A stretch of 64,000 nucleotides of DNA from Hemiscyllium ocellatum. Lineage: Eukaryota. The position numbers were made by a program, and so were the translations under genes. The notes below the pieces were generated by a model. The model was not told the DNA's origin and ran no database searches. It saw only the letters and a program-made list of their open reading frames with translations. Shown here piece by piece: positions 2,276 to 55,184 of this stretch (the first letter of the stretch is position 1; the number at the start of each line of letters is the position of its first letter). The DNA lies in NCBI RefSeq assembly GCF_020745735.1, contig NW_026867487.1:5039239-5103238 (forward strand), given 5' to 3'.

Positions 2276-4403
2276 GAGAGAGAGTAGCCAAGCAGGCTAA
2301 GATAAAAGGTAGGGAGGAGGGACTTGGGGGAGGGGCGATGGAGGTGGGATAGGTGGAAGGAGGTCAAGGTGAGGGTGATAGGCCGGAGTGGGGTGGGGGC
2401 GGAGAGGTCAGTAAGGAGATTGCAGGTTAGGAGGGCGGTGCTGAGTTGAGGGAACCGACTGAGACAAGGTGGGGGGAGGGGAAATGAGGAAACTGGAGAA
2501 ATCTCAATTCATACCTTGTGGTTGGAGGGTTCCCAGGCGGAATATGAGGCGCTCCTCCTCCAGCCGTCATGTTGTTATGTTCTGCCGATGGAGGAGTCCA
2601 AGGACCTGCATGTCCTCGGTGGAGTGGGAGGGAGAGTTAAAGTGTTGAGCCACGGGATGGTTGGGTTGGTTGGTCCAGGCGGCCCAGAGGTGTTCTCTGA
2701 AGTGTTCCGCAAGTAAGCGGCCTGTCTCCCCAATATAGAGGAGGCCACATCGGGTGCAGCGGATGCAATAGATGATGTGTGTGGAGGTACAGGTGAACTT
2801 GTGGCGGATATGGAAGGATCCCTTGAGGCCTTGGAGGGAAGTGAGTGTGGAGGTGTGGGCGCAAGTTTTACATTTCCTGCGGTTGCAGGGGAAGGTGCTG
2901 GGGGTGGAGGTTGGGTTGGTGGGGGGTGTGGATCTGACGAGGGAGTCACGAAGGGAGTGGTCCTTGCGGAACGATGATAGGGGAGGGGAGGGAAATATAT
3001 CCTTGGTGGTGTGGTCCGTTTGGAGGTGGCGGAAATGACGGCGGATGATACGTTGTATGCGGAGGTTGGTGGGGTGGTAGGTGAGAACCAGTGGGGTTCT
3101 GTCTTGGTGGCGGTTGGAGGAGCGGGGCTCAAGGGCGGAGGAGCGGGAAGTGGAGGAGATGCGGTGGAGGGCATCGTCGATCACGTCTGGGGGGAATCTG
3201 CGGTCCTTGAAGAAGGAGGCCATCTGGGCTGTGCGGTGTTGGAACTAGTCCTCCTGGGAGCAGATGCGGCGGAGACGAAGGAATTGGGAATATGGGATGG
3301 AGTTTTTGCAGGGGGCAGGGTGGGAGGAGGTGTAGTCCAGGTAGGTGTGGGAGTCAGTCGGTTTATAGTAGATGTCTGTGTTGAGTCGGTCGCCCGAGAT
3401 AGAGATGGAAAGGTCTAGGAAGGGGCGGGATGAGTCTGAGACAGTCCAGGTGAATTTGAGGTCGGGATGGAAGGTGTTAGTAAAGTTGATGAACTGTTCA
3501 ACCTCCTCGTGGGAGCACGAGGCAGTGCCGATACAGTCATCGATGTAGCGGAGGAAAAGGTGGGGGGTGGTGCCAATGTAGTTGCGGAAGATGGACTGTT
3601 CCACATATCCTACGAAGAGACAGGCATAGCTGGGGCCCATGCGGGTGCCCATGGCAACCCCTTTAGTTTGGAGGAAGTGGGAGGATTGAAAAGAGAAGTT
3701 ATTCAGGGTGAGGGCCAGTTGAGTCAGTCGAAGGAGGGTGTCAGTGGAAGGGTACTGGTTGGTACGGCGGGGAAGGAAGAAGCAGAGGGCTTTGAGTCCT
3801 TCGTGATGGGGGATGGAGGTGTACAGGGACTGGATGTCCATAGTGAAAATAAGGCGTTGGGGACCGGGGAAGCGAAAATCCTGGAGGAGGTGTAGGGCGT
3901 GGGTGGTGTCCCGAACGTAGGTGGGGAGTTCTTGGACTAAAGGGGACCTCTATATTGGGGAGACAGGCCGCTTACTTGTGGAACGCTTCAGAGAACACCT
4001 CTGGGCCGCCCGGACCAACCACCCCGTGGCTCAACACTTTAACTCTCCCTCCCACTCCACCGAGGACATGCAGGTCCTTGGACTCCTCCACCGGCAGAAC
4101 GTAACAACACGACGGCTGGAGGAGGAGCGCCTCATATTCCGCCTGGGAACCCTCCAACCACAAGGTATGAATTGAGATTTCTCCAGTTTCCTCATTTCCC
4201 CTCCCCCCACCTTGTCTCAGTCGGTTCCCTCAACTCAGCACCGCCCTCCTAACCTGCAATCTCCTTACTGACCTCTCCGCCCCCACCCCACTCCGGCCTA
4301 TCACCCTCACCTTGACCTCCTTCCACCTATCCCACCTCCATCGCCCCTCCCCCAAGTCCCTCCTCCCTATCTTTTATCTTAGCCTGCTTGGCTACTCTCT
4401 CTC

Positions 4404-4438
4404 ATTCCTGATGAAGGGCTTATGCTCGAAACGTCGAA
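4404..4438 (+). ncRNA. Minimal type-I hammerhead ribozyme motif in PLE pLTR (right arm)
   Basis: CTGATGA at 4408-4414, stem II gggc/gctc, GAAA at 4428-4431, palindromic ACGT stem III, predicted cleavage after C4435 (GUC). Confidence 0.75.
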
Positions 4439-5588
4439 CTCCCTATTCCTGAGATGCTGCCTGACCTGCTGTGCTTTAACCAGCAACACATTTTCAGCAA
4501 TGAAAATATCCTCAATTGCAGTTTTATTGGGCTAACATTGCCTGGCCACTTCTTTCTCTTTATGGAAATATAACATTGCACTCTTCAGTTCAAATGATTG
4601 CTGTGTAATTGTCTACCTGGCTATCGTCCATTTTCTTATCTTAATCGCCAAAACATAATCAAGGAAAGAAGCATTTGTAGAATGACTCGGAATATTGCAT
4701 AGTCTGTGGAGGATGGTGGAGGGGGTAAAGGGTGACTGTTTGCGTAAAGGTTTTGTGATTGGACTTGTATCAAGAGGACCAGGCTAATATTCTGGGGACA
4801 ATAGCTGTTGAAATGGAAATTGAATTCCTAAATAATCTTATATTAGCTAGACGCCCTATAACGGTGGTTGTGAAATTGTCATCGATTGCTCAAAAAAACA
4901 AATTTATTCTTTGTAATCTGACAGGAATGGAAATCTGCCATTCCGAATTGATCTCAGCTTGGTTTATCTACAGACCGGGAACCCTTTGAAATGACTGACC
5001 AATCACTCAATGAGCTATTACTGGTGTTTTCAGTCATGCCCAATTTCCATGAGCGAATAGAAGAAAACGTAGATCATGACCCACACATTGCATCATTAGT
5101 TTATTCTTCTGAGTCCTGCCCGTCCAGCAACATTTTAAGTGCAACTTTTATTCTTGTCTTTCAGCTGAAGAACATATGATTGTAATAGCTGAGAGGCAAC
5201 GGTTCATGGGCTCCCTTATGCGAGTATTCATTTCAAATGAGATTCTGATGCAAGTTTTTTTCTTAAAAGAAAAATGTTCCACACGTCAGGAAAAGGTGAA
5301 CAGAGTTGCAGCATGATCTCAAGTCAGCGACAAATACCAAGGCTGCAATGAAAGTGGGCCGAGGGCTTGAAAGAAGTTACTGAGAAAGATAAAGAGTGTG
5401 GGAAGGTGATTTTGTGCAGCAGCCCTTGATGGGAATGCAACTGTCATCAGAGCAGCCAATCTCGTCCATGAAAACTCCTTTCAGTTTCTTCCTAAGTGAT
5501 GCCTGACCCAAATCTGACGTAGAATTTAATATTGGACAGATAGCATAAGTAAAACCTTCTGCTTTATTTTATGTTGAGCACTAACTCT

Positions 5589-7699: not shown

Positions 7700-7847
7700 A
7701 AACACACAAAAAACTGTGATGATCCCAGTATTAAGGGATTATGCATTTTGAAACACCTTATAAAAGCAGATTTTTTTCCCCTCAAGTAAAGATGAAATTG
7801 ATAGAGATGTTTTACACTGACTTAGGTTTCTTGGCGGGATAATCATA

Positions 7848-7978
7848 AATGAAGAGAAAGTGAGGCCTGCAGTTGCTGGAGATCAGATTCGAGAGTGTGG
7901 TGCTGGAAAAGCACAGCAGGTCGTGCAGCATCCGATGAGCACGAGAATCGACCTTTCGGGCATGAGATTCCTGATGAA
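7848..7978 (-). mobile_element. Miniature PLE pLTR insertion with an inverted junction inside the hammerhead, 12-bp TSD
   Basis: TSD gggataatcata at 7836-7847 and 7979-7990. The minus-strand pLTR tail stops in hammerhead stem II and is followed by plus-strand attcCTGATGAa. Confidence 0.75.
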
Positions 7979-9714
7979 GGGATAATCATAGAGACAATGT
8001 TTTGGGCTAGGGAGGATTCCAAAATCAATGTGTCTTCATTGCAAGAGTCAGAAACAAAATTGATTCCAAAATTTAAGAGAAGCCTAATTCTTCTTCGGAA
8101 TATGGACTCTCCGGCTCAAGAGCGGCTGAACCAACTGCACAAATTCATAAAGGAGAAGTCAGGTAAATAGATGAAGAACAGATGGAAATAGAGGCACGAG
8201 CATTGAAACAGAAGAAGCGGAAAGCCCCAAATTTCTTCTGTGATGTGACAACATGGATATAGACCAACAGTCGTATTCGTGTACAAATTTCTGTTCAATT
8301 TCATGTCACAACGAACACCATTTTTTGTACACTCATCTCGATCCAAGTTAAATTTATTCAACGAATTCCTCTTTCTTTAGCCTTGTATTCCCGATCTGGG
8401 CGCTGGAATTTCTGTGTCTCGGCGGGACAGATGGAGGTGCAAGATGCCAGTTAAAACTGTACCTAAACTAACGAAGGGTATTGCATGAGTCCCGTCAGTA
8501 ATCATTTAGTCAAACGAGTTTGCAGTCCGGAGGGACAAGAGTGGCGGTGCTAAATCTGATTTCCCTCAGAACTAGTTTTCCTATATAGTCCCGCTGTCAG
8601 ACAAGTTGCACTGACTGACAACATCAGGGCCGCTGCTGCCTTACATCATGTTCTATGATTCTAAAATGAGCCTCTCAGCGATCGGAGCATGTGAAAGCCT
8701 GATACAATCGCCGCCGCCGGTTTCTGGGCCGCAGCTGCTGCCTGTTGCAGACTGGACACAGCAACAGATCACAAACGGAAACTTCAGGATTTACTTGCGA
8801 GGGAGACCACAGACCATAATCCATGGAAGCATCATTATATAAACGCCCACATCCATTGATGATTCTGACATTGACTATGTGTTGGAGGAAATGGCTGCTA
8901 TTGATTTGTGAATTTCTGATAACTTGCCACTCCGATGAAGAAGGCAACACTTGAAGTGGCTTGAAACGAAATATATCCCAGTCCAAACGTCTCAGAAATA
9001 TTTCATTCAAAGGAACAAATAGTAGTGATATGAAATATCAATTTACAGTGGGCACTGAAGCCTGTCCAGTGAAAGTTGAAACAATTGTAGGAATCTTGAT
9101 TACAGAGCTCTCAATGTTAAAGACATTTACATATAATCGATCAAACATCTATAATACTAGCAGGCGCACGACGTTGTTATCAAGACAGGAAGCTAATGAA
9201 CAAGCATTAGTTCAACAATAATCTATAGCAAAGGACCTGCAGGTTCGTGGAATAGCTGATTGATGATCAAAAGCCAGACTAAGGACAAAAGCCAAATTGA
9301 AATATGTCAGGAAGAATGGTGGGATTGCTTTTTGGATATTGGACACGTCACATAACGTTAATCTGCCACGTTTCTGTTGTAATTTTATCTTGTGTCGTAC
9401 GTAGTTCTGAAGCTGATGTTTCATGTTTTCTGGTGTGTACCTCCTTCACTTGGCTGGAGCACAATGCCAGATACTTCTATTGCAATCACCGATTTGCACA
9501 ATGACATAAATTCTCCAAGCGCATGTTTGCATTTTAGTCAAATGTATTCAACATAAAGTGAGGACAGAGATCCTTCTCGGAAGCTGCACCCATTGACCTC
9601 AGTGTGTTAATTATTTTGTTATATTTGAACTTGGCTCATTCTGGTATAAAGGTAGGAAGTAAATGTTACTCTCGACTCGACTACCACATCTTGCACTTTG
9701 TTCCATTGGGGCGC

Positions 9715-9753: not shown

Positions 9754-10267
9754 TCTCTCAGTCCGCAGTAATATACTGCGCTGTCAGACAGCTGCAGTTC
9801 ATAGATGGTGAAATTCCCCTCATTTTTTGACTTGTCCAAAGATGCAGAAAATCGATCGGACACCCCCTCTCCTCTCCTGATACTGCCATAGTTGTGAACG
9901 TAGATTAAGAATATTGGAGATTTCCCTGGATCCTGGCGGTACAGTTGCAACGTATACGTGTCATCTGTGGTCGAATATCTGAAATGAATGGTGACTGAAT
10001 CTCTTTCAAATTGTGTCACTGTAACCGGCTTCTGTGAGATCGAATCGGCACAATTAACACCTTTGCAAATATAGAAAAAAAGTGACATTAAAATGATGAT
10101 GATGACGAATGTGACAAGTCAACGCATACACTGTAATAGAGGGAAATACAGACAAATCGAAAATTGCAATAAACATTTTACCTAGAAGAGAATATTTTAC
10201 AACTCAGAAACTTACCTGTTAAGAGTGTTGCAGTAGTGAGAAACGAGTAAATGGTAATAGTCGACAT
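9754..10267 (-). CDS. TCR alpha/delta-type V segment Vb1, non-canonical (Cys23->Phe, Trp41->Leu)
   Basis: Leader exon 10267-10216 MSTITIYSFLTTATLLT(G) with GT donor. V exon 10060-9754 is open and ends YYCGLRD. Confidence 0.9.
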
Positions 10268-10394
10268 GTTTGCAGAGCAGATGGTGGGCTAGAACAAAGA
10301 AAGTTGAAGCTGATTCTTTTGAGCTGGCAGTCAATGGGTGTCATATCCGGTCTCGCTGCCGAATTGTTCCCTTCTGTCAGAGTCATCATATATC

Positions 10395-10440
10395 ACCCAA
10401 TCGGCTAACACCCGCTTTGTTCTCCAGTCCATGACGTCAA
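10395..10440 (-). promoter_or_regulatory. Vb1 promoter: CRE palindrome and CCAAT box
   Basis: TGACGTCA at 10432-10439 and ccaat at ~10397-10401, 130-170 bp upstream of the ATG. The CRE is also present at 55337-55344 (Vb3). Confidence 0.6.
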
Positions 10441-22263: not shown

Positions 22264-22424
22264 GAACAACATGAACTGAGTTCCTTCTCTGACTTCGCCT
22301 ACGGACAAATAAAACTGCCAAATACCAATGTTGGTTCAATTCTTTCTAAAACCCGCTGTCTGGTGAATAAATCCACTGTGTTCCTTTCTCATGCGGCCAC
22401 CTGAAATGAAGTTCAAAGAGCCAG

Positions 22425-22510
22425 TAGCTGATTGGTTGAATCGAACAACAAAGGCGTTTGAAACTCATTGGTTGTCACCCGATGTCTTTGTCAATAATGA
22501 ACCAATGGGA
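22425..22510 (+). promoter_or_regulatory. Clustered CCAAT boxes upstream of the Ve distal leader
   Basis: gattggtt, cattggtt and accaat, conserved at ~30535-30615 and ~50225-50305. Confidence 0.5.
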
Positions 22511-22597
22511 AGATATCCGGAAAGGTTACCGATTCTTGACTAAAGCTATTTTAGCTTCAACCGTTCTGCTGACATTCACTGTGATCTCTCTGCAACA

Positions 22598-23689
22598 ATG
22601 TCACCTGAAGCACTGTGTTTATTCCTCACGACTGCAGCTGTTCTAACGGGTAGGTTGGTAACTTGAGGATCTCTGTATTTCAGATCCGCAGTGGCAATTG
22701 CAGTTGTCCGAGCAGTTCCATCAACACAGAGGCAGCCATACATTCTCTCCAAATGAAAATCATCATGTGGAGACAAAGTTGTCCAACACCAGCACTGTTT
22801 GCGATGAGTTAGCAAAGGACCCCTAATGAAAGACAGTGGAAGAGTTAGTCTGGGAGTTAAGCAGGACTGAGTCCATTCAGATACTTTGATAGAGGTGAGA
22901 TATTTAAACTCACGTACCGTCTGCAGTTTTCCCTTCGGGATCGGAAAAGACATGGAAAATGACCTTATTAGACAGTGTGATCTATTTACTGAAGGAGGTT
23001 TTATTTAATCTGTCAAAGCCCTTTACCAACATATCTGCTGAGTTGCATGAAATTAATTCCTGTTTATCTTCCCTAACGTAGTTCTCAGTTTATTGTTCAA
23101 GGTGACAGGATGACACTGGCACAAGCATACTGAAGTGTTTTCTGTAATTTCCTGGTTCTCCTGGAGTCTATAACTTCAAGTGCTGATCTTGCTAATGTTG
23201 ACCTTTGCGACATACTCTGTATGCCTCCGTCTAAGTTTGTTCTTCTCATCCTATGATCTGTATGTCCTTCTTTACTATGATCTGCCTATACCGCTCGTAA
23301 ACAAAGCTTTTCACTGCCCTGAGGTACGCATGCCAATAAGTCCATCAATTGACCAATCAAATAAATCGATCAATCAATTTTACAGGACTTTGTCGAGGAG
23401 ATTCTGTCTCACAGACAATGGCTTCGATCGTAGTGAATGAGGGAGACAGTGTCTCGATGTTCTGTAATTATACCACAACAAGCAATGCTCCTTACCTTTT
23501 CTGGTATCGTCAACATTCCAGTGGCTCCATGGAGTTTCTGCTACAGAGGAGCAAATTTGGCGTGAACACAGAAAGTTTTGAAGGAGACCGGTTATCCTCA
23601 GAGCTCGAGCATGTCAACCACACCATCTACCTGAAAGTGGTGAAAACAGAACTGTCAGACTCTGCAATGTATTACTGCGCACTGAGCCC
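22598..23689 (+). CDS. TCR alpha/delta-type V segment Ve1 (distal leader 22598-22649; V exon 23386-23689)
   Basis: Leader MSPEALCLFLTTAAVLT(G)|GTAGGT, phase 1. V exon GLCRGDSVSQ..MFCNY..FWYRQ..SAMYYCALS is open. 23-RSS CACGGAG/ACAAAAACT at 23690-23728. The leader assignment is inferred. Confidence 0.8.
22690..22995 (+). pseudogene. Decayed V exon relic inside the Ve intron
   Basis: Unit-2 copy: KCKIIM..PIPALF[G]. Unit-3 copy: YPTPALF-(t)gg-tat. Unit-1 and unit-2 copies end ..LLDS/GV(I/T)..tac-TGA, a DSAxYYC remnant. Confidence 0.5.
23221..23296 (+). pseudogene. Dead proximal leader exon of Ve
   Basis: MP(P/L)S(K/W)FV(L/P)LIL*..LL*SAYTA(G)|GT, phase 1, 89 nt from the V acceptor. Two in-frame TGA in all copies (also 31325-31400 and 51000-51075). 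Confidence 0.7.
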
Positions 23690-24769
23690 CACGGAGACTC
23701 AGAACTGGACTGACCCTGTACAAAAACTGTCAGGGAGTCACTGAACATGACAGTGTGTCAGGCAAACGGTGAGATCAGGAGTGGATCTGAAATTGTACCC
23801 GAATTCGCAGTGATATCTGATAATTTTCATTTGAATACATAATTGCAATAAGCTAAATCTGCCAGTTTCGTGAATGAAAAGTGATTACATGATTTTTTGC
23901 CCTTAAGATGTACCAAAGCATTCCACGTTTACAGCGATGTAGAAAATGCAACAACCAGTTACATCTAACAAAAGTCAAAACATTTGATTGGAGAAACAGT
24001 CGTCGTTCACATGATTCTGTTGGGTCACCTGAATCTCTGGAGCAACTGGAATAGCATCAATCATTTCGTGGGATATTGAGTCCTGCCACTGCAGCTGCAT
24101 GTCAGGATTTTGCAAATAACGAAGGACAGAATCGTTTATCCAGGACTTCGCAGGCTTGCTTTCGGATACCAATCAGAGAGTAGGATGTAACTCCGATCTG
24201 AACAACACTAACCAAACAAACGCACTCAATAGCGGCTGATTGACAAGTCAAGGTCACCGGTGAAAGTCTCAGTCTGGTGTGGTTTCTATTTCTTTGGCTG
24301 CCTAGAAATCAACATTTCTCACACAGCACCTAAATTCATTGATTGTTTCCCAATCGTTCACATCTGATTATGTCAATTGTATAAGGACTAGAGGTGCCCT
24401 CCCCTCCCTCTGGCGACATTTAAGAGAATCCGAATACTATTGTGACCACAAGTTGCATTGGAGATGGTGAAGGTGATCTGCCTCTTGGCAGATGGAAGGA
24501 CACTCACAGTGCGATTAGCAAGGGAGTTCCACAATTTTGATTCAGCTACAGTGAAAGAGGATATTCAAGGTGAGCTGGTGATTTATTTTCAGAGAAAGTC
24601 ACAGGTGGTATTGTAATCCCAACGTTTGGAAATTTCAAATTGACTTAGTTTCTTCGTGAATATACAACTCTTCTAGGATTCTGTTCATCTAACGGCATGG
24701 ACACTTAACAGCGACTGCAGTGAGGTTTCCTTTGTGAGTCAGTAAACAAATGGACTGACACTGATTCAA

Positions 24770-29308: not shown

Positions 29309-30700
29309 CACAGTGTTACAAACAGAGGAAGAGTCTGAACAAAAACCTACACCGCGTGTGAAGACCGCAGTGCTGTGTATTCATGTTATTATGTCAAGGC
29401 TCTCTAATTCAATGTTAAGGGGAATGTGGTAACAAACAAATTGCAGCCGAGCAAGATGTAAAGAGTGCAAGAGGTGCAGAGAATTGGAAATCTGGGCGGC
29501 GACAAAACATACATATATACGTATGCATACATGAGTGAAAGATGGGAGAAAGTGCAGAAATAAAGGAATAATACATGTCGAAGAAAGAATGGTGATAATC
29601 CATTGAAAGATAGAAGGATAAAATAACAAGTATCATGCATACATGTTAAAACTTAGATCATTTTAAGTCGTAAATCAACCGTGAAGTAAAGAGGCCTTTC
29701 TTTAAACATCATTCACATTTCAATAACAGTTACATAATTCAGTCGTCTAAACTCCAATCTTACGATATTATCCCATCAAAGCAATTGTTCATTTCCGTGT
29801 GGTGCAACGTTCTTTGATACCCCCACCAGTGAAAACTGTAGTCGAACTCACTTAACCTCTTTATGTCCTTTTCGCAACATCCTCATCACTTGCCTTGCTA
29901 TTTAGTTTTGTGTCTTTGGCAAAATGCATTCTGTTCTGTCAGGATTTGTATTAATATGTACCTCTGCTCTCTCACCATTCCCATTCAGACTTTCAGAGAA
30001 ACTGTGTGATCATGTCTTCCTTCAAAAATATTATAGTATTCGGGTGCTACAGGCCACTCTGGCATGTATCATTATTGTAACTTGAGAATATGGCAGTGAA
30101 ACATTTTGTCCAGGTGCTGCAATGTGTTCGGTGTAGATACCGTGGATTCATTTACGATGGCACAATGTAAAATTAAAAATCAGAAAATGCAACAAAATCG
30201 CAATTCCACTCAACTGCTTTAGTAATTGAAAGTGCACTTTTTTTTTAATGGACATCATCACTGTGTTCAAAACACTCAAACACACTGACCCTCAGCCTGG
30301 GCGAAAGGAAGTTCTCAGAACGCCAGAGAGCAGTTCCCATAACTGCAGAACTCTATTTTCTGGCACTCGAACAACGTGGACTGTGTTCCTTCTCTGACTT
30401 CGCCGACATAGAACTAAAACTGCCAAATGTCATTATTGGTTCAAAATCTATGTAAAACCCCATTGTCTGGCTAATAAATACACGGTGTTCCTTTCACTTG
30501 TGGCCATCTAAAAGGAAGTTCAAGGAGCTTAAAGTTGATTGTTTGAATTGATGAACAAAGGCGTTTGACACTGATTGGTTGTCACCTCATTCCTCTGTCA
30601 ACAATGAACCAATGGGCAGAGATCCGGAAATGTTAGCAATTCTTGACGAAAATTATTTTAACTTCGATCTGCTCACATTCACTGTGATCTCTTGCCAACA

Positions 30701-31792
30701 ATGACACCTGGAGCATTGAGTTTATTCCTCACAGCTGCAGCTGTTCTAACCGGTAGGTTGATAAATTGAGGATTATTTTGTTTCAGATCCCCAGCTTCAA
30801 TTACATTTAACTCAGCAGTTCCATCAACGTAGAGGCAGCGATACGTTCTCTCCAAATGTAAAATAATCATGTGGGGCCAAACGTTTCCAATACCAGCACT
30901 ATTTGGGATGTGTTAGCAAACGACCCAAATTGACAGACAGTGGGAGAGTTAGGCTGGGAATTAAGAAGGACGGGGTCCGCCCAGATACTTTGACAGAGGC
31001 GGGAGCTAAAAACTCATCCACCGTCTGCAGTTTTCCCTTCAGGATCAGGAATGAAATGGAACATGACCTTGTTAGACGGTGTGACCTGTATACTGAAGGA
31101 GGTTTTATTTAATCTCGCAAAGACCTTTACTAATACAGCTGCCGAGTTGCGTGAAATTAATTTCCGTTTATCTTTCTTAACTTATTTCGCAGGTTATTGT
31201 TCAAGGTGACAGGATGACTGTGGCATAAGAATAATGAAGTGTTTTCTGTAATTTCTGGATTCTCCTGGAGTCTCTAACTTCAAGTGCTGATCTTGCTAAT
31301 GCTGACCTTTACGACATAGCCTGTATGCCTTTGTCTTGGTTTGTTCTTCTCATTCTATGATCTGTATACACTTCTTTACTATGATCGGCCTATACCGCTG
31401 GTGAAGAAAGCTTTTCAGTGCACTGAGGTACACGTAACACATAGTTCATCAATTAACCAATCAAGTAAATCGATCAATCAATTTTGCAGGTCTTTGTCGA
31501 GGAGATTCTGTCTCACAGACACCGGCTTCAATCACAGTGATTGAGGGGGACAATGTCCAGTTGTTCTGTAATTATACCACAACAAGCAGTACTCCTTACC
31601 TGTTCTGGTACCTACAACATTCCAATGGTTCCATGGAGTTTCTGCTACGGAGAAGCAAATTTGAAGCGAACGCCGAAAGGTTTCAAGGGGACCGGTTTTC
31701 CTCAAAGCTCGATCATGTGAACAGCACCATCAACCTGAAAGTGGTGAAAACAGACTGGCAGACTCTGCAATGTATTACTGCGCACTGAGCCC
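30701..31792 (+). pseudogene. V segment Ve2, frameshifted
   Basis: Leader 30701-30752 and V exon from 31490. One G is missing at 31754/31755 (acagactgg versus acagagctgg in Ve3), upstream of DSAMYYC. RSS at 31793-31831 is intact. Confidence 0.88.
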
Positions 31793-34464
31793 CACGGAGA
31801 CTCAGAACTGGGCCGACCCTGTACAAAAACTGTTAGGGAGTCACTGAACATGACAGTGTGTCAGGCAAGCGGTGAGATCAGGAGTGGATCTGAAATTGTA
31901 CCCGAATTCGCGGAAAATCTGATACTTTTTCACTTGAATACATGACTTTATTCGTTATAAATATGTTATTGAGATAAACTAAAGCAGTCAGTTTCGTGAA
32001 TGAAAAGTGAATGCATGATTTCATGCCTTTTGAAATGTCCGAAAACGTTCCACAATGAGCGACGTAGAAAATGCAGCATCGAGTGACATCCAACAAAATC
32101 CAAAGCATCTGGTTAGTGAAACAATGATCGGTCACGTGATTCTGATCGGCCACGTGCATCGCTGGAGCAACCTGAATAACATCAAACATTTTGTGCTGTA
32201 TTGAGGTCCTGCCTCTGCAGCTGCATGTTAACCGTTTCAAAATAGAGAGAGACAGATTCGTAGGCCCAGGATAATGCAGGCTTGCTTTCAAATACCAACA
32301 GCAAGTGGGATGTAACTCCGATCTGAACAACACTAACCAAACAACACACTGAATAACGGCTAATTAATGAGGCAAAGTGACCAGCGGAAGTCTTATTCGC
32401 ATGTGGTTTCTGCTTGCTGGGCTGTCTGGAAATGAACATTCTTCACCAAACACCTAAATTTGTTGATTGTTCCCAATCGTTCACATCTGATAACGTCAAT
32501 TTTATAAGGACGAGAGGATCCTGTCCTCCCTCTGGTGACATTTAAGAGAAACCAAATACTAGTATGACCACAAATTGCATTGTAGAAGGTGAAGGGGATC
32601 TGCCTCTTGGACTGCTGAACTCCTTGAGATGGAAGGAAACTCACAGTGCTGTTAGCAAGGGAGTTCAAGAATTTTTGACTCAGCAACTGTGAAAGAATAT
32701 ATACTGTTCTAGGTAAGATGGTGACTTACTTTGAGAGAAAGTTACTGACGGTATTATAAGCCAAACGGTAGGAATTTTCGAATCGATTTAGTTTATTCTT
32801 GGACGTATGCCTCCTCCAGGATTCTGTTCATCTCACAGTCTGGACACTTATCAGTGACTGCAGGGGGTTTCTCTTGGGGTCATTAAACTGACGGACTGAT
32901 GCTGATACAAAAACGGGGGTTGCTGGAAAAGCTCAGCAGGTCTGGTGGCATCTGTGAAGAGAAATTAAAATTTACATTTTGTGTCCTGTGCCCCATCCTC
33001 AGAATTGAGACAACATTTTCAATACAACCCCTATTTGAAGACATCGCTTGGCTGGTGGTGGGAAGGGCACGACCGTGCATGCATGGTCCGCCTCTGTCAC
33101 CACACACTGCCGTCGAACTGGCTGCCGAGAGTTTGGAACTGGCATACATCTCCTGCTGCAATGTACCTTTGCTAAGTAAGTGTGGAGGAAAATGCAATAG
33201 TATTGTTGAGATTCGTCCTGAGCAGCTCCATGTAACTGACGGTCTGTTCCCTCGGACACAAACCTTTACATCAACTGTATCTTGAGGACCATCAAAACAT
33301 TGAAAGACACTCTTTGGTCTGCCTGAGACTTGTTCGTCGTCCAGAAGAAGGAATTGACTCAGATAGAGTGTTACGGATTAAGATATTCCAATGACCAGGA
33401 GTACATGCTGAGGCTCGCATTAAAGATTGGGGCAACTACTGCCAAAACACAGTGGGGAAAAGACCACAGTCTGAGGTCATCCTGCTGAAGGTAAATGAGC
33501 GTCAATTCAGTTATTGGACTCTCCTAGTGTGGCAACTATATATAGATTGTACTGCTGCATGTGCAAGAGAGGTCTTTGGCTTTGTATATAATCAAACTCG
33601 AACGTTCTGTGTACTTACTTGATATGCAACTGTGCAGAACAGAACGTTTTTTGGTTCAATTTATATGCACAAAGAGTTTTGACTCAGAATATACTTTATG
33701 AATAAAATATATTTTCGAAATTAAAGCAAGTGTAATCGAGGCGTGATTAATCCTTATTGAAAACTTCACCCAATACACTGATGTGGCGACATGAACCAAA
33801 GTCAAAAGTGTGGCACTGGAAAAGCACAGCAGATCAGGCAGATCAGGAGAGTCAACGTTCCAAGCTTAAGTTCTTCAGGAATGATGCACTCGTCACTTTC
33901 TCCCCCGACTTGAAGTAAAGTCAGTCATAGCAATGTTCGAAGGTCTCTGCAAAGACTGCTTTATATTCACACAAAAAAAACCAAGTGGATTTAGATCATA
34001 AAATGCTACCATGCGTAGGAATGGTAAGATGATGTAATCGTTGAGAAATGTGAAGTACAATCAGAAACTATAGAAGCTACAGAGCTTCAGCAAATCTTGC
34101 AGTATCTGTCAAAAGAAAGTAGTGTTAACCTTTTGAGTCTGATATGACTCCTCTTCAAAACGTTTCCTTCGAGTGGTGTTTTCTCAGCTTTTGCGACAAT
34201 GGTTGAGAGAACACATCATTAACACCAATGTTCTCCATGCTACTGAGGTGCATTGGTGAAAATTAATTTCGTATAATCTGATCTCCCAATCTTCACTATG
34301 TAGGTGCAAACTGAAAGCCAGAGGCGTGACATTGACAATCTCAATGTTATTGTTCCTCTCATCATTCTAAACTGTCCGCTTCTGAATTGGCTGTATTTTG
34401 CCCTTTGAGGTCTATCCCCAACTTCGAACGGAATCTATCCCATGCCAACTGTTGCAGAAATATT

Positions 34465-35834: not shown

Positions 35835-36349
35835 TGTCTCAGTCCGCAGTAATATACTGCGCTGTCAGACACCTGCAGTTCATAGATGGTGAAATTCCCC
35901 TCATTTTTTGACTTGTCCAAAGATGCAGAAAGTCGATCCGACACCCCTTCTCCTCTGATGATATTGCCAAAGTTGTCAACGTAGATTAAGAATATTGGAG
36001 ATTTCCCTGGGTCCTGACGGTACAGTTGCAACGTGTACGTGCCATATGTGGTCGAATATCTGAAATGAATGGTGACTGAATCGCTTTCAGATTGTATCGT
36101 TGTAACCGGCTTCTGTGAGATCGAATCGGCACAATTAACACCTGTGCAAATATTGAAAGAAAGTGACATTAAAATGACGATCACTATGAATGTTACCGAG
36201 TCAACGCATATACTGTAATCGAGGGAAACACAGACAAATCGAAGATTGCTATAGATATTTTACCTAGAAGGGAATATTTTACAACTCAGAAACTTGCCTG
36301 TTAAAAGCGTTGCAGTAGTGAGAAACGAGTAAATAGTAAGAGTCGACAT
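35835..36349 (-). CDS. V segment Vb2, non-canonical (no Cys23/Trp41), GC-AG leader intron
   Basis: Leader 36349-36298 with donor GCAAGT. V exon 36141-35835 is open. 23-RSS CACAGTG/ACAATAACA at 35834-35796. Confidence 0.88.
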
Positions 36350-37629
36350 GTTAGCAGAGCAGATGGCGGTTTAGCATGAAGAGAATTGAAGCTGATTCTT
36401 TTGAGCTGGCAGTCAATGGTGTGTCATATCCGGTCTCGCTGCCGAATGGTTCACCTCTGTCAGAATCATCATACCGCACCCAATCAGCCAGCAGCCGCTT
36501 TATTCTCGTCCTCGACGTGTTGACGGCATGAAATCCATTGGGAAATAGGGGAGGCCGTTTGCTCCACTAGTGAACAATATGGTGTTTGATTCATATAATT
36601 TCCAAATTCTGGCAGCCTACTCAAATCTCATCTGTCTTTTTGATGCATCAATCTACCAATATCGACTCGAAATGTCCTCCACCCCAGGGCAAGAAATACT
36701 TTCTGATCACTGAATAAAGCTGAGGGGAGTACTAACTTCAATTCTCCTCTTTAATGCTCATTGAATTCAAGAGCAGGGAGGTTCTGCTGCAATTGTGCAA
36801 GGTGTTGGTGAGTCCATACCGGGAGTATTGTGCGTAGTTCTGTACTCCTCATTTGAGGATGAATTTACTGGTTTTGGAGGCGGTGCAGAGGATGTTCGCC
36901 AGAATGATTGCACGGAAGAGGGGGGTTAGTCGAGGAGGAGACGTTGATTCGCCTTGGACTGCACTCGCTCGAATTTAGAAGAATGAGAAGCGACCTTGGT
37001 GGTACGTATAAAATTATGAAAGGGATGCATTAGATAGATGGAGACAAGTTATGTCTGCTGGTGGGTGAGACTAGGACTAGAGGACATGGCCTCAAGATTA
37101 CTGGGAGTGGATGTATGGTAGCATAAAGGGAGGAACTGCATTTCCTGGAGACAGTGGAATTCCCTGCCAATGGAAGCAGGACAAGCAGCTTCATTAAATT
37201 AAATTAAGACACGTTTGAATGAGTTTTTGCATGTTCAGGAAAATAAGAGTTATGGGGACAATGCAGGCCAGAGTAGCCGAGGCAATGGATAGATCTTAAT
37301 GAATGGCGGAGCGGGTTCGACGGGAGAAATGGACATCTCCAGCTTCGATTAGTTTGTGCCATCGGCTCCAGAAAACGAGAGCTGCTAACTCATCACCAGG
37401 AACTGGCATAGCGATATAAAATATTTTCATGTAGAAAAGTGCACAATGTGAATTGCAGAAAGTGGGATTTTGGAACTATTGAAGTTTGTCGTTTCGTTTC
37501 CAATGTCTTATCAGTTGAGAATTCAGCGACATATCAGCAATGCGGCTTAGGATGGAGGTAGGGAATGAACGGTCATGTGTGTGTCTGGCTAGTTTTTGTA
37601 CGGACTGACTGCAACTCTTGATCAGCGTG

Positions 37630-40163: not shown

Positions 40164-42830
40164 CCAGGGGAACACTACCCCTGCTCATGACTCCACCCCC
40201 GTTACCCCGAGGGGAACACTACCCCTGCTCATGACTCCACCCCCATTTCCCCCACCATCACACCCACTCCAGTTACTGGCTCCACTCCTGGCTCCACACT
40301 CACACTAGATCCCAGCTCCCAGCCCTGCCGAGTTTTCATCATCCCTCCAGACCTCGCCCTCACTGAGGACGAACGATCAGTCCTCAGCAAAGGACTCACC
40401 TTCATCCCCCACCCCGTCCATGCATCAATGAATTTAATACATGCCGTGACGTCGAACAAGTATTCCGTTGCCTCCGACTCCGAGCTTGCTTTCATAATCA
40501 TGATTCCCGCCCACCTTCCGAGGACCCATTCGCCCACCTCCAACACACTGCATCCAACTGGACACCCCGCGCTGGCCTATTACCTGCCCTCGACCTGCCA
40601 TCAGGACATTTTCCGCCTCAACCTGTCTACCTCCCCTCCCGAACTCCAACCTCTGACTCTCACAACGCATAGCCATCCAATCCCTCTGCTCCGATCCCAA
40701 CATCACCATCAATCCAGTGGTAAATGGGGTGCAGTGGTAGTCTGGCGCACTGACCTCTACACCGCTGAAGCCAAATGCCAACTAGAGGACACCTCTTCCT
40801 ACTGCCCCCTCGACCATGACCCCACTCCCCATCACCAAACCATCATCTCCCAGACCATACAGAACCTCATCTTCTCTGGAGATCTCCCACCCACAGCTTC
40901 CAACCTCATAGTCCGGGAACTCCGCACTGCCCGGTTCTCCCTCCTTCCCAGGATCCACAAGCCTGACAAACCTGGCTGACACATTGTCTCAGCATGCTCC
41001 TGCCCCACTGAACTCATCTCTATCTACCTCACACTGTCCTATTCCCCCTAGTCCAGGAACCCTCCACGTACGTTCGAGACACCATCCACGCCCTTCACCT
41101 CCTCCAAGACTTCCATTTCCACGGCCCCCAACGCCTCATCTTCACCATGGATATCCAATCCCTCTACGCTTCCATCCGCCATGACCAAGGCATCCAAGCC
41201 CTCCGTTTTTTTCCTCTCCAGACATCCCCAACAGTACCCTTCCACCGACACTCTCATTCGTTTGGCCGAACTGGTCCTCACCCTTAACAATTTCTCCTTT
41301 TAATCCTCCCACTTACTCCAGATCAAAGGGGTAGCCATGGGCACACGTATGGGCCCCTGCTATGCCTGTCTCTTTGTTGGCTAAGTAGAACAGTTGATCT
41401 TCCGTAATTACACCAGCACTACTCCCCACCTCTTCCTCCACTACATTAATGACTGCATTGGAGCCACCTCGTGCTCCCGCGAGGAGGTCGAGCAATTCAT
41501 CAACTTCACCAACACATTCTACTCTGACCTTAAATTTACCTGGACCATCTCTGACACCTCTCTCCCCTCCTGGACCTCTCCATCTCCATTCATGATGACC
41601 GACTTGACACTGACATTTTTTACGACCCACTGACTCCCACAGCTACCTGGATTACACCTCTTCCCACCCTACCTCTTGCAAAAATGCCATCCCTTTACTT
41701 CCAATTCCTCTGCCTCCGCCGTATCTGCTCTCAGGAGGACCAGTTCCACTATAGAACACAACAGATGGCCTCCTTCTTTAGTGACCGTAATTTCCCTTCA
41801 AACGTGGTTAAAGATGCGCTCCAACCCATCTCGTCCACATCCCGCACCTCCGCCCTCAGACCCCACCCCTCCAACCGTAAACAGGAGAGAACGCCCCTGG
41901 TGCTCACCTTCCACCCTGCAAACATTCGCATAAACCAAATAATCCGCCGACATTTCTGCCACCTCCAAAAAGACCCCACCAACAGGGATATAGTTCCCTC
42001 CCTGACCCTTTCCGCCTTCCACAAAGACCGTTCCCTCCGTGACTACCTGGTCAGGTCCACGCCTCTGAACAACCCACGCTCCCATCCTGGCACTTTTCCC
42101 TGCCACCGCAGGAACTGTAAAACCTGTGCCCACACCTCCTCCCTCACGTCTATCCAAGGCTCTAAAGGAGCTTTCCACACCCATCAAAGTTTTATCTGCA
42201 CATCCATCAATATCATTTATTGTATCCGTTGCTCCCGATGCGGTCTCCTCTACATTGGGGAGACTGGGCGCCTCCTAGCAGAATGCTTTAGGGAACATCT
42301 CCGGGACACCCGCACCAATCAACCACACTGCCCCGTGGCCCAACATTTCAACTCCCCCTCCCACTCTGCCGAGGCCATGGAGATCCTGCGCCTCCTTCAC
42401 CGCCGCTCCCTCACCACCAGACGCCTGGAGGAAGAACGCTTCATCTTTCGCCTCAGAACACTTCAACCCCAGGGCATCAATGTAGACTTCAACAGTTTCC
42501 TCATTTCTCCTTCCCCACCTCACCCGAGTTCCTAACTTGCAGCTCAGCACTGTCCCCATGACTTGTCCGGACTTGCCCTACCTGCCTGTCTCCTTTTCCA
42601 CCTATCCACTCCACCCTCTCCTCCCTGACCTATCACCTTCATCCCCTACCCCACTCACCCATTGTGCTCTATGCTGCTTTCTCCCCACCCCAACCTCCTC
42701 TAGCTAATCTTTCCACGCTTTAGGCTCACTGCCTTTATTCCTGATGAAGGGCTTCTGCCTGAAACGTCGATTTCGCTGCACATTGGATGCTGCCTGAACT
42801 GCTGTGCTCTTCAAGCACCACGAATCCAGA
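40164..42830 (+). mobile_element. Decayed Penelope-like element (RT + GIY-YIG + 3' pLTR), unit 3 only
   Basis: MDIQSLYASI at 41147, GVAMGTRMGP, YIND (decayed YIDD), IIYCIRCSRCGLLYIGETGR at ~42210-42270. Several stops and frameshifts. Splits the ZNF relic (compare 59620-59640). Confidence 0.9.
42737..42771 (+). ncRNA. Minimal hammerhead ribozyme motif in PLE pLTR
   Basis: attc-CTGATGA-a-gggc-ttct-gcct-GAAA-cgtc-gat. Confidence 0.7.
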
Positions 42831-48950: not shown

Positions 48951-50390
48951 GGCAGTGTTATAAACAGAGGGAGAGTCTGAACAAAAACATATGCTGCACT
49001 GCTGTGCATCAATGCAATTATTTCAGGGCTCTATAATTCGATGTTAAGGGGACCACGGTAACAGAAAAAGAGACAGAACAGCCGAGAAAGACGTAAAGGG
49101 TGGACGAAGTGAAGAGAATTGAAAATATGGTGAAGACAAAGCAAGCACATTCACATATGCTAACATCAGTGAAATAAAAGATGAGAGAAAGTGCGGAAAT
49201 AAAGTAACAACTCATATAGAAGATAAAATGATGGCAATCTATTGAAAGATAAATGCAAAAATAACGAGTGTCATGCATAGACGTTAAATATTAAATCAGT
49301 TTAAGTCATAAATTAACCTGGAAGGATAGTAATATGGCCTTTCTTTTAACATCATTCAAATTTAATTAACACTTACGCATTCCAATTTTCTCAAAAATGA
49401 TTCGAATAAGCTAATCATTTGACATCATCCCATCGACTCAACTTTTCATTTCCTTGAGGTGCAACGTTCCTAGATATCTGTTCCAGTGGAAACTGTAGTC
49501 CCACTCACTTGAATTCTTTGTGTCCTAATCGCAGACACTTTGTGTCATCCTCACCACTTGCCTTGCCATTTACTTTTGCGTCGTTGGCAAAATACATTTT
49601 CTTCTGTCAGGATTTCTATTAATGTGTACCTCTGCTCTCTCACCATTCCCATTCAGACTTTCAGAGAAACTGTGTCATCATGTCTTCCTTCAAAAAATAT
49701 TACAGTATTTGGGTGTTGCATGCAACTCTTGTATGCATCACTAATACACGTTGAAAATGTGGCAGTGAACCGTTTTGTCTTTTTGCTGTAATGTACCCGG
49801 TGTAAATACCGTTGATACATTTGCGATGGCACAATGTAAAATTAAAGAAATGTCGATTGCTATGACTCTTACCAGAAAATGCAGCAAAATCGACATTCCA
49901 CTCAACTAGTCAAGAAATTGAAAATGCACATTTTTTTAATGGTCATCGTCACTGTGTCCAAAAAAACTCAAACACACTGACTCTCAGTGGCGAAAGGAAG
50001 TTCTCAAAACGCCAGAGAGCAGTTCTCTGAACTGAAGAACTCCAGTTTCTGACACTCGAACCACGTGGACTGCGTTCCTTCTCTGACTTCGCCTGCAGAG
50101 AACCTAAAACTGCCAAATATCAGTGTTGGTTCAAAATGTATGCAAGACCCCGTTGTCTGGCTAATAAATTCACGGAGTTCCTTTCTCTTGTGGCCATATG
50201 AAATGAAGTTCAAAGAGCGTGAAGCTGATTGGTTGAATAAATGAACAAAGACGTTTGACAATCATTGGTTGTCACCTCATGCCTTTGTCAACAATGAACC
50301 AATAGGCAGAGATCCGGAAATGTTAGCAATTCTTGACGAAAAGTATTTTAGCTTCGATGTGCTCACATTCGCTGTGATCTCTCGGTAACA

Positions 50391-51469
50391 ATGACGACTG
50401 GAGCGTTGTGTTTATTCCTCACAGCTGTAGCTGTTCTAATGGGTAGGTTGATAAGTTGACGATCTTTTTCTTTCATATCCACAGTGACAATTACATTAAC
50501 CCCAGCAGTTCCATCAAAGTAGAAGGAGCGATGCATTCTCTCCAAATGAATATAACCAAATTTATCCAACACCTGCACTATTTGGTATGAGTTAGCAAAA
50601 GACCCAATTGAAAGACTGTTGAAGACTTAGTCTGGGAATTAAGAAAGACGGGGTCTGTTCAGATACTTTGACAGAGGCGAGAGCTATAAATTAACATACC
50701 GTTTGCAGTTTTCCCTTCAGTATCGGGAACGAAATGGAAAATGAACTTGTTAGGCGGTGTGACCCGTGTACTGAAGGAGGTTTTATTTAATCTGGCAAAT
50801 CCCTTTACCAATACAGCTGCCGAGTTGCATGAAATTAATTTTTGTTTTTCCCGAACTTATTTCGCAGGTTATTGTTCAAGGTCACGGGATGACTGTGGCA
50901 TCAGAATAATGAAATATTTTCTGTAATTTTCAGATTCTCCTGGAGTCTCTAACTTCAAGTGCTGATCCTGCTAATGTTGAGTTTTGCGACGTAACCTGTA
51001 TGCCTCTGTCTAAATTTGTTCCTCTCATTCTATGACCTGTACATCCTTCTTTGCTATGATCTGCCTACACCGCTGGTAAAGAAAATTTTCCAGTACACTG
51101 AGGTACTCGTGACAAATAGTCAATCAATTGACCAATCAAGTAAATCGATCAATCAATTTTTGCAGGGCTTTGCCTAGGAGATTCTGTCTCACAGACACCG
51201 GCTTCAATTGCAGTGAATGAGGAGGACAATGTCCAGTTGTTCTGTAATTATACGACAACAAGCAATACTCCTTACCTGTTCTGGTACCTCCAACATTCCA
51301 ATGGTTCCATGGAGTTTCTGCTCCGGAGAAGCAAATTTGGCGCGAACGCAGAAGGGTTTCAAGGAGACCGGTTTTCCTCAAAGCTCGATCATGTGAACAG
51401 CACCATCAACCTGAAAGTGGTGAAAACAGAGCTGGCAGACTCTGCAATGTATTACTGCGCACTGAGCCC
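50391..51469 (+). CDS. V segment Ve3 (distal leader 50391-50442; V exon 51166-51469)
   Basis: Leader MTTGALCLFLTAVAVLM(G). V exon is open. 23-RSS CACGGAG/ACAAAAACT at 51470-51508. Confidence 0.8.
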
Positions 51470-54400
51470 CACGGAGACTCAGAACTGGGCCGACCCTGTA
51501 CAAAAACTGTCAGGGAGTCACTGAACATGACAGTGTGTCAGGCAAGCGGTGAGATCAGGAGTGGATCTGAAATTGTATGCGAATTCGAGGAAAATCTGAT
51601 ACTTTTTCACTTGAATACATACTCTATTCGTTATAAATATATTAGTGAAATAAACTAAAGCTGTCAGTTTAGTGAATGAAAAGTGAATACATGATTTCAA
51701 ACCTTTTGAAATGTCCCAAAGCGTTCCACGTTTACTGCAATGAGAGATAGCGAAAATGCAGCAACGAGTTACGTCCAACAAAATCCAAAGCATTTGGTGA
51801 GGGAAACCTCGTGATTCTGATCTGCCACGTGCATCGCTGGAGCAACCTGAATAACATCAAACATTTTGTGTGTAGTGAGTACTGTCTCTGCAGCTGCATG
51901 TTAACAGTTTCAAAATAGAGAGAGACAGATTCGTTGGTCCAGGATAACGTAGACTTGCTTTCAAATACCAACCAGCAAGTGGGATATAGCTCCAATCTGA
52001 ACAACACTAATCAAATAAACACACTCAACAATGGCAGATTAATGAGGCAAAGTGATTAGTGGAAATCTTATTCGCATGTGGTTTCTGCTTATTGGGCTGT
52101 CTGGAAATGAACATTCTTCAACGAACACCTCAATTTTGTTGATTGTTCTCAATCGTTCATACCTGATTATGTCAATTGTGTAAAGACAAGAGGATCCTGT
52201 TCTGCCTCTTGCGACATTTAAGTGAAACCGAATACTATTACGACCACAAATTGCATTGGAGAAGGTGGAGGTGATCTGCCTCTTGGACTGCTGAGCTCTT
52301 TGAGATGGAAGGAAACTCACAGTGTTGTTAGCAAGGGAGATCCAGAATTTTGACTCAGCGGCTGTGAAATAATATATATACTGTTCTCTGTAAATTGGTG
52401 ACTTACGTTGAGAGAAAGTTACAGGTGGTATTGTAATCCAAACATTCGGAATTTTCGAATCGATTTTGTTTAGTCTTGGATATATGACTCCGCTGGGATT
52501 CTGTTTATTCAACTGCCTGGACACTTATCCCTGATTGCAGAGATTTTCCCTTTGGGTCATGAAACTAATGGACTGATACTGATACAAAAACCGGGGTTTC
52601 TGGAAAAGGTCTGGTGGCATCAGTGAAGAGAAATTAAAGTTTACGTTTTGTGTCCTGTGCCCTTTCCTCAGATTTGAGACAACATTATCAATACAACCCC
52701 TATTTGAAGACATCGTTTGGCTCGTGGTAGGAAAGGCACTACCATAAATGCATAGTCCGCCTGTGTCACCACAAACTGCCCTTGAACTGGCTGCCGAGGG
52801 TTTGGCATTGTCACAAACTTGTCGATCAAATTTTGCAGATTGAGATATTCTCATGATCAGCTCTACATGCTGAAGTCCACATGAAAGATTGGGGCAGCTA
52901 CTGCCAAGACACAGTGGGGAAAGACCATAGACTGTGGTCATCATGCTGAAGGCAAATGAGGGTACATTCAATTCTCGGACTTTCCTAGTGTGTCAAATAT
53001 ATGTAACTAGCAGCGTTGTATGTGCAGGAGAGGTCTTTGCTTTGTATTTAGTCAAACTCGAACGTTCTGTGTGTTTACTTGATAAGCAACTGTGTAGAAC
53101 GGAACAGTTTTTAGTTCAAGGTATATACATGAAGATATTGTTTTATGAGTAAACTATATTTTTGAAATTAAAAGAAGTTCAATTGAAGTGTGATTATCGC
53201 TTATTGAAAACTTCACCCAACACCCTGCTCTGGCGACGTGAAATAAAGTCAAAAGTGTGGCACTGGAGACGCACGACAGGTCAGAAAGATCTGGAGGGTC
53301 AACGTCTCGAGCTTAAGCTCTTCATCAGGAATAATGCAGTCCTCACTATCTCCCCCGACATGAAGTAAAGTCACTCATAGCAATTTTGAAGGTCTTTGCA
53401 AAGACTGCTTTTTATTCCCCCCTCCCCAACAAAATGAAGTTAAATCACAAAATGATAACATTGCAAAGGAATATTACGGTGATGTAATCGGTGACAAATA
53501 TGCATTAACATCAGAAACAGCTACGGAGCTTCAACAGATCTGGCAATATCTGTCAAGAGTGAAACTATGTTAACTTTTCGAGTCTGATATGATTCCTTTT
53601 CAGAACGTTTTGTTCTCAACTTTTGTCATAATGGCTGAGAGAACACACCGTTAACGCCATGTTCTCCAGGCTACTGAGGTGCATTTGCGAAAATTGATTC
53701 CGCATAATCTGCTCTCCCAATCTTCACTGTGCAGGTGCAAATTGAAAGCCAATGGCGTGACATTGACAATCTCAATTTTATTCTTCCTCTCACAACTCTA
53801 AACTGTCCACTTCTGAAATGGTTGCATTTTGCTCTTTCATGTCTAACTCCAACTTCGAACGAAATATATCCCAGATCAAACGTTCCAGAAATATTACATT
53901 CAAAGGAACAAATGGATTTGACATGAAATATCAACTTACAATGGTCACTGAAGCCTGTCTTGTGAATGTCCAAACAATTGTAGTAAACTGATCAGAGATT
54001 TCTTAATGTTAAAGACATTTACATGTATTAGTATGAAGTATCTACATCATTAGATTGTGCCATGACATTGTTATCAAGACGGGAAGCTAATGAGCAAACA
54101 TCAGTACAACAATAATCAATCACAGAGGAAGCATAAGCTGCAGATACATGGAATAGCTAATGGATGATCAAAATCAGACCGAGGGCAAACGCTAAATTGA
54201 AGTATATCAGGAAGAATGACAGATTTGCTTTTGGATATTGGACGCATCTCATCTCATTGCTCGAAGTCAAGTTTCTGTTGTCACTTTATTCAGTGTCGCA
54301 GGGAGTTCTGAAGCTGATGATTCATGATTTCTGTTGTGCACCCCCTTCACTGGCTGGAGCACAATGCCAGATATTTCTAGCAGTAATTCTATGTCAATCA

Positions 54401-54670: not shown

Positions 54671-55184
54671 TCTCTCAGTCCGCAGTAATATACTGCGCTG
54701 TCAGACACCTGCAGTTCATAGATGGTGAAATCCCCCTCATTTTTTGACTTGTCCAAATATGCAGAAAATCGATCAGACACCCCCTCTCCTCTGCTAATAC
54801 TGCCAACGTTGTCAACGTAGATTAAGAATATTGGAGATTTCCCTGGGTCCTGACGGTACAGTTGCAAAGTATGCAAGCTATAGGTGGTCGAATATCTGAA
54901 ACGAATGGTTACTGAATCTCTTTCAAATTGTCTCACTGTAACCGGCTTCTGTGAGATCGAATCGGCACAATTAACACCTGTGCAAATATAAAAAGAAAGT
55001 GACATTAAAATGACGATCACGATGAATGTTACCGAGTCAACGCATATACTGTAATCGAGGGGAACACAGACAAATCGAAAATTGTTATAGATATTTTAAC
55101 ACTACAGAATATTTTACAACTCAGAAACTTGCCTTTTAAGAACATTGTAGTAGCGAGAAATGAATAAATAATAACAGTCGACAT
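54671..55184 (-). CDS. V segment Vb3, non-canonical (no Cys23/Trp41), GC-AG leader intron
   Basis: Leader 55184-55133 MSTVIIYSFLATTMFLK(G) with donor GCAAGT. V exon 54977-54671 is open. 23-RSS CACAGTG/GCAAAAACA at 54670-54632. Confidence 0.88.

Follow-up and report, generated by a model that had tools for sequence, protein, structure and literature searches.

Genes and features at the locus

The window, a stretch of 64,000 nt from Hemiscyllium ocellatum (positions 5,039,239 to 5,103,238 of contig NW_026867487.1, assembly GCF_020745735.1), comprises a shark V cluster of the TCR alpha/delta type, with 4 V families in 3 copies each, two families lying on either strand. A literature search on the TCR loci of this species found none. 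We describe here the family that we call Ve, whose 3 copies (c1 to c3) are ~84% identical to each other by alignment and whose features are listed in Table 1. The family sample consisted of 8 loci from two hemiscylliid sharks, namely the 3 window copies and 5 loci fetched from Chiloscyllium punctatum (L001 to L005), onto each of which profile pieces of the window unit were mapped. The identity between c1 and the contig L004 is 93-95% throughout, flanks included; for L002, L003 and L005, the V-exon protein is only ~62% identical to that of Ve. The L003 contig also carries, at 4671-4782 of the minus strand, a partial, inverted V-exon fragment of the Ve type, ~2.4 kb upstream of the intact gene.

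Table 1. Features of the Ve genes and of the neighbouring VF family, in window positions
Feature	Positions	Strand	Remarks
Ve copy 1 (c1), unit	22300-23800	+	direct reading, alignment
Putative promoter and 5' UTR, c1	22400-22597	+	motifs, conservation, homology
Leader exon (L-PART1), c1	22598-22649	+	ATG start, 52 nt, phase 1, donor GG/GTAGGT
Leader intron, c1	22650-23385	+	736 nt
Putative 'decayed V exon' of the sequence-only reading	22685-22996	+	intron sequence common to the whole family, in L001-L005
Subfamily-specific block adjoining the acceptor	23176-23385	+	~210 nt; in c1-c3, L001 and L004 only
V exon, c1	23386-23689	+	L-PART2 G-LCRG, then DSVSQT...YYCALSP; Pfam V-set E 1.5e-11
23-spacer RSS, c1	23690-23728	+	CACGGAG, 23 nt, ACAAAAACT
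Conserved block just after the RSS	23729-23800 (also 31832-31900, 51509-51575)	+	~70 nt, alignment
Ve copy 2 (c2), unit	30412-31903	+	leader 30701-30752, intron 30753-31489, V exon 31490-31792, RSS 31793-31831
Ve copy 3 (c3), unit	50105-51577	+	leader 50391-50442, intron 50443-51165, V exon 51166-51469 (open), RSS 51470-51508
VF promoter and 52-nt leader	10217-10439	-	MSTITIYSFLTTATLLT; homologous to the Ve 5' module
Other VF promoter/leader copies	36300-36505, 55140-55336	-	

In copies 1 and 3 the Ve V exon is open and encodes a V-set domain in which Cys23, Trp41 and Cys104 are recognizable (FC...WYRQ...YYCAL); copy 2 is frameshifted by a 1-nt deletion near 31754. The exon is 89% identical to that of the C. 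punctatum sequence P0001. In 3/3 copies it is followed directly by the 23-RSS given in Table 1, the core of which (heptamer CAC, nonamer ACAAAAAC) is invariant across all 8 loci. An earlier interpretation of this DNA, made from the letters alone and referred to below as the sequence-only reading, had likewise counted two copies with an intact exon and RSS. In c1 the acceptor AG at 23384-23385 is preceded by a weak, A-rich pyrimidine tract, and lies behind the ~210-nt block described later in this report.

Putative promoter and distal leader

We observed inverted CCAAT motifs (ATTGG) near 22432 and 22468 and a CCAAT motif near 22504, which places the three of them 90-170 nt upstream of the leader ATG of c1. 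The putative Ve promoter is homologous to the promoter and leader of the V family at 9762-10046 on the minus strand, here called VF (nhmmer E 1.6e-8; z 7.8). Downstream of these motifs lies the distal leader, which reads MSPEALCLFLTTAAVLT, MTPGALSLFLTAAAVLT and MTTGALCLFLTAVAVLM in the three Ve copies and is open in each of them, as is the Ve-family leader in every copy where it is readable. It encodes a hydrophobic signal peptide, and joins in frame and in phase 1 to G-LCRGDSV of the V exon. On this point our results agree with the sequence-only reading, which had placed an intact 52-nt phase-1 leader ~740 nt upstream of the V exon, behind CCAAT boxes; we read it so in 3/3 copies.

Conservation against the diverged C. 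punctatum paralogs, expressed in bits/nt, was 0.48-0.60 for the promoter and 0.50-0.92 for the leader, as compared with 0.69-0.73 for the V exon and 0.59-0.62 for the RSS plus 60 nt. Parts A and B of the intron gave 0.20-0.35, and the flanks 0.06-0.23. Constraint on the distal promoter and leader thus resembles that on the V exon and RSS, whereas the intron after the distal leader drifts close to the neutral flanks, and is itself neutrally evolving sequence.

Leaders joined to the V exon in other sharks

A protein search with the Ve V exon yielded three informative sequences. P0002, a C. punctatum gene model, reads MSTGALFLTAAAVLSG followed by LSRGDSVSQ; P0003 (UniParc UPI0001F848B3), a V-J-C-alpha sequence of 212 aa, reads MLPEARYLFLNAAVLLTG followed by LCRSDSVSQ; and P0016, a Stegostoma tigrinum model named 'T cell receptor alpha chain', reads MLPSVPHLFITAVVALPV followed by LCRGDSVTQ. 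In all three a homologous leader runs into LC(R/S)xDSV(S/T)Q precisely where the exons were predicted to meet, and the junction T-G/LCR that they contain is the one predicted from a splice of 22649 to 23386. Because of this match, the residues that stand before LCR in the cDNA are those of the distal exon and not those of the ATG-initiated stretch closer to the V exon. The claim of the sequence-only reading that Ve takes its leader from the exon ~740 nt upstream is therefore borne out by the junction shared among these homologues, and from these other species we infer that the same splice is used in H. ocellatum. The identity between the distal Ve leader and the leader of P0003 is 59%. It should be noted that V joined to C-alpha was seen for family members of other sharks only (P0003 and P0016), and that the C. 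punctatum models derive in part from ab initio prediction, with P0001, P0004 and P0005 having other 5' ends. An exhaustive search of representative sequences gave mostly concatenated multi-V gene models, and no NAR-type partner was seen.

According to the primers given in Ott et al. 2018 (eLife; PMC5931798), the nurse-shark alphaV1 leader contains MLPEA and C-alpha contains SKGLLSTN. Since both of these primer sequences are present in P0003, it is most likely a nurse-shark TcR alphaV1 cDNA, an identification made by primer match rather than through a named record, and the Ve family appears to correspond to TcR alphaV1. The V domains of the two are 67% identical and have the same L-PART2 and start (LCR-DSVSQ), and the leaders are homologous, with MLPEA...LLTG in the nurse shark sequence vs MSPEA...VLTG in Ve. 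In P0003 this V is used with C-alpha. For the nurse shark, the comparison covers cDNA-type sequence.

The ATG stretch and the block next to the V exon

The sequence-only reading had taken a stretch close to the V exon for Ve's own leader, now dead. In c1 this stretch runs for 76 nt from an ATG at 23221 to 23296; its codons 12 and 20 are in-frame TGAs, and it ends at a GT (23297) located 89 nt before the acceptor. The two TGAs and the 89-nt spacing stand in 3/3 window copies, and the same two TGAs occur in L001; the identification as a leader is not supported beyond chance. We defined a leader-like candidate as an ATG, 40-82 nt and a phase-1 GTRR, with two or fewer stops, and found ~4 of these per kb per strand in the window, with 0.57 expected in a zone of 140 nt. 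At this frequency, about one proximal 'leader' is expected by chance. Moreover, the block that contains the stretch is absent from L002, L003 and L005. An apparent 24-nt duplication, by which the 76 nt had been explained as 52 + 24, was not confirmed either: Tandem Repeats Finder reported nothing there, and by eye the two units match at 16/24 positions. In our main reading, this stretch resembles a leader by chance only, inside a block limited to one subfamily. Within the subfamily that bears the shared stops, V-exon dN/dS is 0.3-0.7, which argues that these genes have been kept working by another leader.

In L002, L003 and L005, where the ~210-nt block is absent, a good acceptor, which aligns to ~23160-23168 of c1 (cctggttct..ag), stands immediately before the V exon. 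The L002 acceptor, near 8266, has 2 extra nt, so that splicing from the usual donor would shift the frame. No further copy of the block was found by nhmmer in the window and the 42 kb of C. punctatum loci, and none of the window's leader regions proved similar to it. The V-exon tree, which is unrooted with the outgroup too distant and support of 36-65%, is compatible with insertion as well as with deletion of the block; of the two, a precise deletion restoring an in-frame acceptor would seem less probable. We also observed that the block carries two CCAAT motifs, and that it occupies precisely the space that separates the ancestral acceptor from the V exon.

The long leader intron

A usual V-gene leader intron is ~0.1-0.3 kb long. 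The leader introns of the Ve copies measure 736, 737 and 723 nt, and those of the C. punctatum loci 718, 412, ~435, ~525 and ~916 nt, the last of which includes an extra repeat-like insertion. The Ve-family range of 0.4-0.9 kb compares with 148 nt in VF and ~80 nt in Vb, two neighbouring families of the window. An extra repeat-like insertion of ~400 nt lies within the leader intron of L002, at 7820-8220.

Promoter, leader and intron parts A and B (the first ~500 nt) occurred in the same order in 5/5 C. punctatum paralogs, and a leader with a long intron was found in 8/8 family members examined from the two species. As this layout is common to all 8 members, including the ~62%-identical paralogs, it is ancestral to the family and older than the split into subfamilies. 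The central claim of the sequence-only reading, that the distal leader had been captured from an upstream gene after Ve's own had died, is not supported, given this result and the chance-level occurrence of the proximal stretch.

As part of the same proposal, a decayed V exon had been placed directly behind the distal leader, at an acceptor ~34-42 nt from the donor. We did find an AG there, 35 nt after the distal donor in c1 and present in most copies, and examined the intron for remains of a V gene by several methods. A V-domain HMM built from 35 V sequences gave only negative scores with six-frame intron translations from the 8 loci, the plus strand being no better than the minus strand. In frameshift-tolerant local alignments of protein to DNA against the window's four V families, forward scores equalled those of reverse-complement and shuffle controls; a lone outlier, c3 vs Ve1 (score 53), dissolved in tblastn. 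An approximate ancestral intron consensus from three lineages gave nothing convincing, with shuffles reaching the score at proportions of 0.04-0.9. None of ten open intron pieces matched an Ig family in Pfam, the 22685-22996 segment resembled none of the window's V exons at the DNA level, and we detected no RSS relic in 22650-23385. Resemblances to FR1, FR3 and IgNAR motifs that were seen by eye in the intron had no test to back them and were set aside as pattern-seeking. The proposed decayed V exon is thus without a V-set signal by HMM, frameshift-tolerant alignment or Pfam. These tests are weak for an old relic: a positive control put the detection limit near 30-40% substitution, and since power is lost beyond this range, an old V relic is possible, though nothing shows one.

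Interpretation and alternatives

We consider, with a probability of about 80%, that Ve is an ordinary two-exon germline TRAV (TCR alpha/delta V) gene, the long leader intron of which is the ancestral layout of its family. Transcription would begin behind the CCAAT/ATTGG boxes; the 52-nt leader at 22598-22649 would be spliced in phase 1 over the 736-nt intron to 23386, giving ...AAVLTG-LCRGDSVSQ...; and the 23-RSS at 23690-23728 would serve V-J joining.

The capture idea can be moved back in time, to before the family diversified. A V gene with a VF-like promoter and leader would then have died, and its leader would have been spliced over the corpse (~500 nt) to the next V. The unusual length of the leader intron in all members fits such a history, as does its neutral evolution, which is what a corpse would undergo; yet V-set signal is absent from every frame, every copy and the approximate ancestral consensus, with forward scores equal to those of controls, a VF-like V with <40% decay is excluded, and the intron has no RSS relic. 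The Ve 5' module is homologous to that of VF, whose intron is only 148 nt long, and this could be read as the trace of a VF-like donor. However, V-domain identities are 38% for Ve-Vb, 35% for Ve-VF and 38% for VF-Vb, with no mosaic pattern, and such equal distances (35-38%) combined with a shared 5' module are sufficiently explained by common descent of whole genes, without recombination. The AG 35 nt after the Ve donor, which would be the dead gene's acceptor, has its counterpart in a TTCTAG ~34 nt after the donor in the VF intron itself, so that its presence in Ve does not require an acceptor to have stood there. In the aggregate, we regard an ancient capture as unlikely. The corresponding statement about the DNA, that the first ~500 nt of the intron are an eroded, extinct V gene or V cassette and that the whole family stems from an ancient fusion through which a downstream V gene acquired its neighbour's promoter and leader, is in our view improbable. 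If true, and demonstrated in an outgroup, it would illustrate on a modest scale the reshuffling of V-gene 5' modules.

The VF genes have a peculiarity of their own: in 3/3 copies (9762-10046, 35843-36127 and 54679-54963, all on the minus strand) Phe replaces Cys23 and Leu replaces Trp41.

It is also conceivable that the window Ve copies are silent pseudogenes, in which the weak acceptor went unused once the 210-nt block had arrived and no leader is joined to the V exon. Copy 2 is indeed frameshifted, the acceptor has a pyrimidine tract rich in A, and the P0001 model begins inside the V exon. Set against these points are the dN/dS of 0.3-0.7, the invariant RSS, the conservation of promoter and leader across copies that all carry the block, and the P0002 model from C. 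punctatum, which splices across it. We judge this explanation to be very unlikely.

Hardly credible is a further explanation, in which Ve is or descends from the leaderless supporting V-delta of NAR-TCR (a likeness raised as an alternative in the sequence-only reading) and the upstream sequence is a dead NAR-TCR V-D-J cassette. The order of leader, something else, and acceptor with V is superficially similar, but the defining features are absent: CDR1 (NYTTTSNAPY in c1) lacks a Cys in all copies, and cDNA-type sequences of relatives from other sharks have the leader directly on V, together with C-alpha. An FGIG occurs in c1 but in none of the other copies, and searches of the intron for RSS, conserved J motif and V signal were negative.

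Relation to known systems

Ve, as the ordinary TRAV gene that we take it for, resembles standard vertebrate TRAV genes in its leader exon of ~50 nt, its phase-1 split codon, its V-set domain with Cys23, Trp41 and Cys104, and its 23-spacer RSS, and differs from them in its leader intron of 0.4-0.9 kb. The supporting V-delta of NAR-TCR (Criscitiello et al. 2006, summarised in PMC1845163) has no leader, carries a conserved Cys in CDR1, and is located downstream of a NAR V-D-J. Ve is like the supporting V-delta in that its V exon is entered through a splice acceptor, with other or non-coding sequence between leader and V. It is unlike the supporting V-delta, as there described, in having a family-specific leader in cDNA, no CDR1 Cys, and relatives that pair with C-alpha; nor was a NAR V, D or J detected upstream of Ve.

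Human VH transcripts in T cells (PMC2189686) are reported as a case in which a V leader is replaced by another 5' exon through splicing. The likeness is that a V-exon acceptor can take an exon other than its own leader. The human transcripts described there are sterile, with unrearranged VH and in the wrong cell type, whereas the distant exon of Ve is a regular, conserved leader.

For annotation, our results mean that V genes of the Ve family need a leader exon modelled 0.4-0.9 kb upstream of the V exon. Without the distal leader, these genes look leaderless or gain false 5' exons, as in 3 of the 5 C. punctatum models. The results also remove a proposed case of promoter/leader capture, and show that chance alone can place a leader-like stretch with stops close to a V exon; they are otherwise ordinary.

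Other features of the window

The ~70-nt block just after the RSS is 96-99% identical among the window copies and L001/L004, vs ~75-85% in the flanks. It holds a palindrome, CACTG-aacatga-CAGTG, and is partly retained in the diverged C. punctatum paralogs. Elsewhere in the window, an inverted repeat with 97% identity between its arms (2181-2741 vs 3947-4498) lies in a G-rich, strongly skewed segment; near 41-43 kb (41049-42808), the opposite strand carries a related counterpart of this segment.
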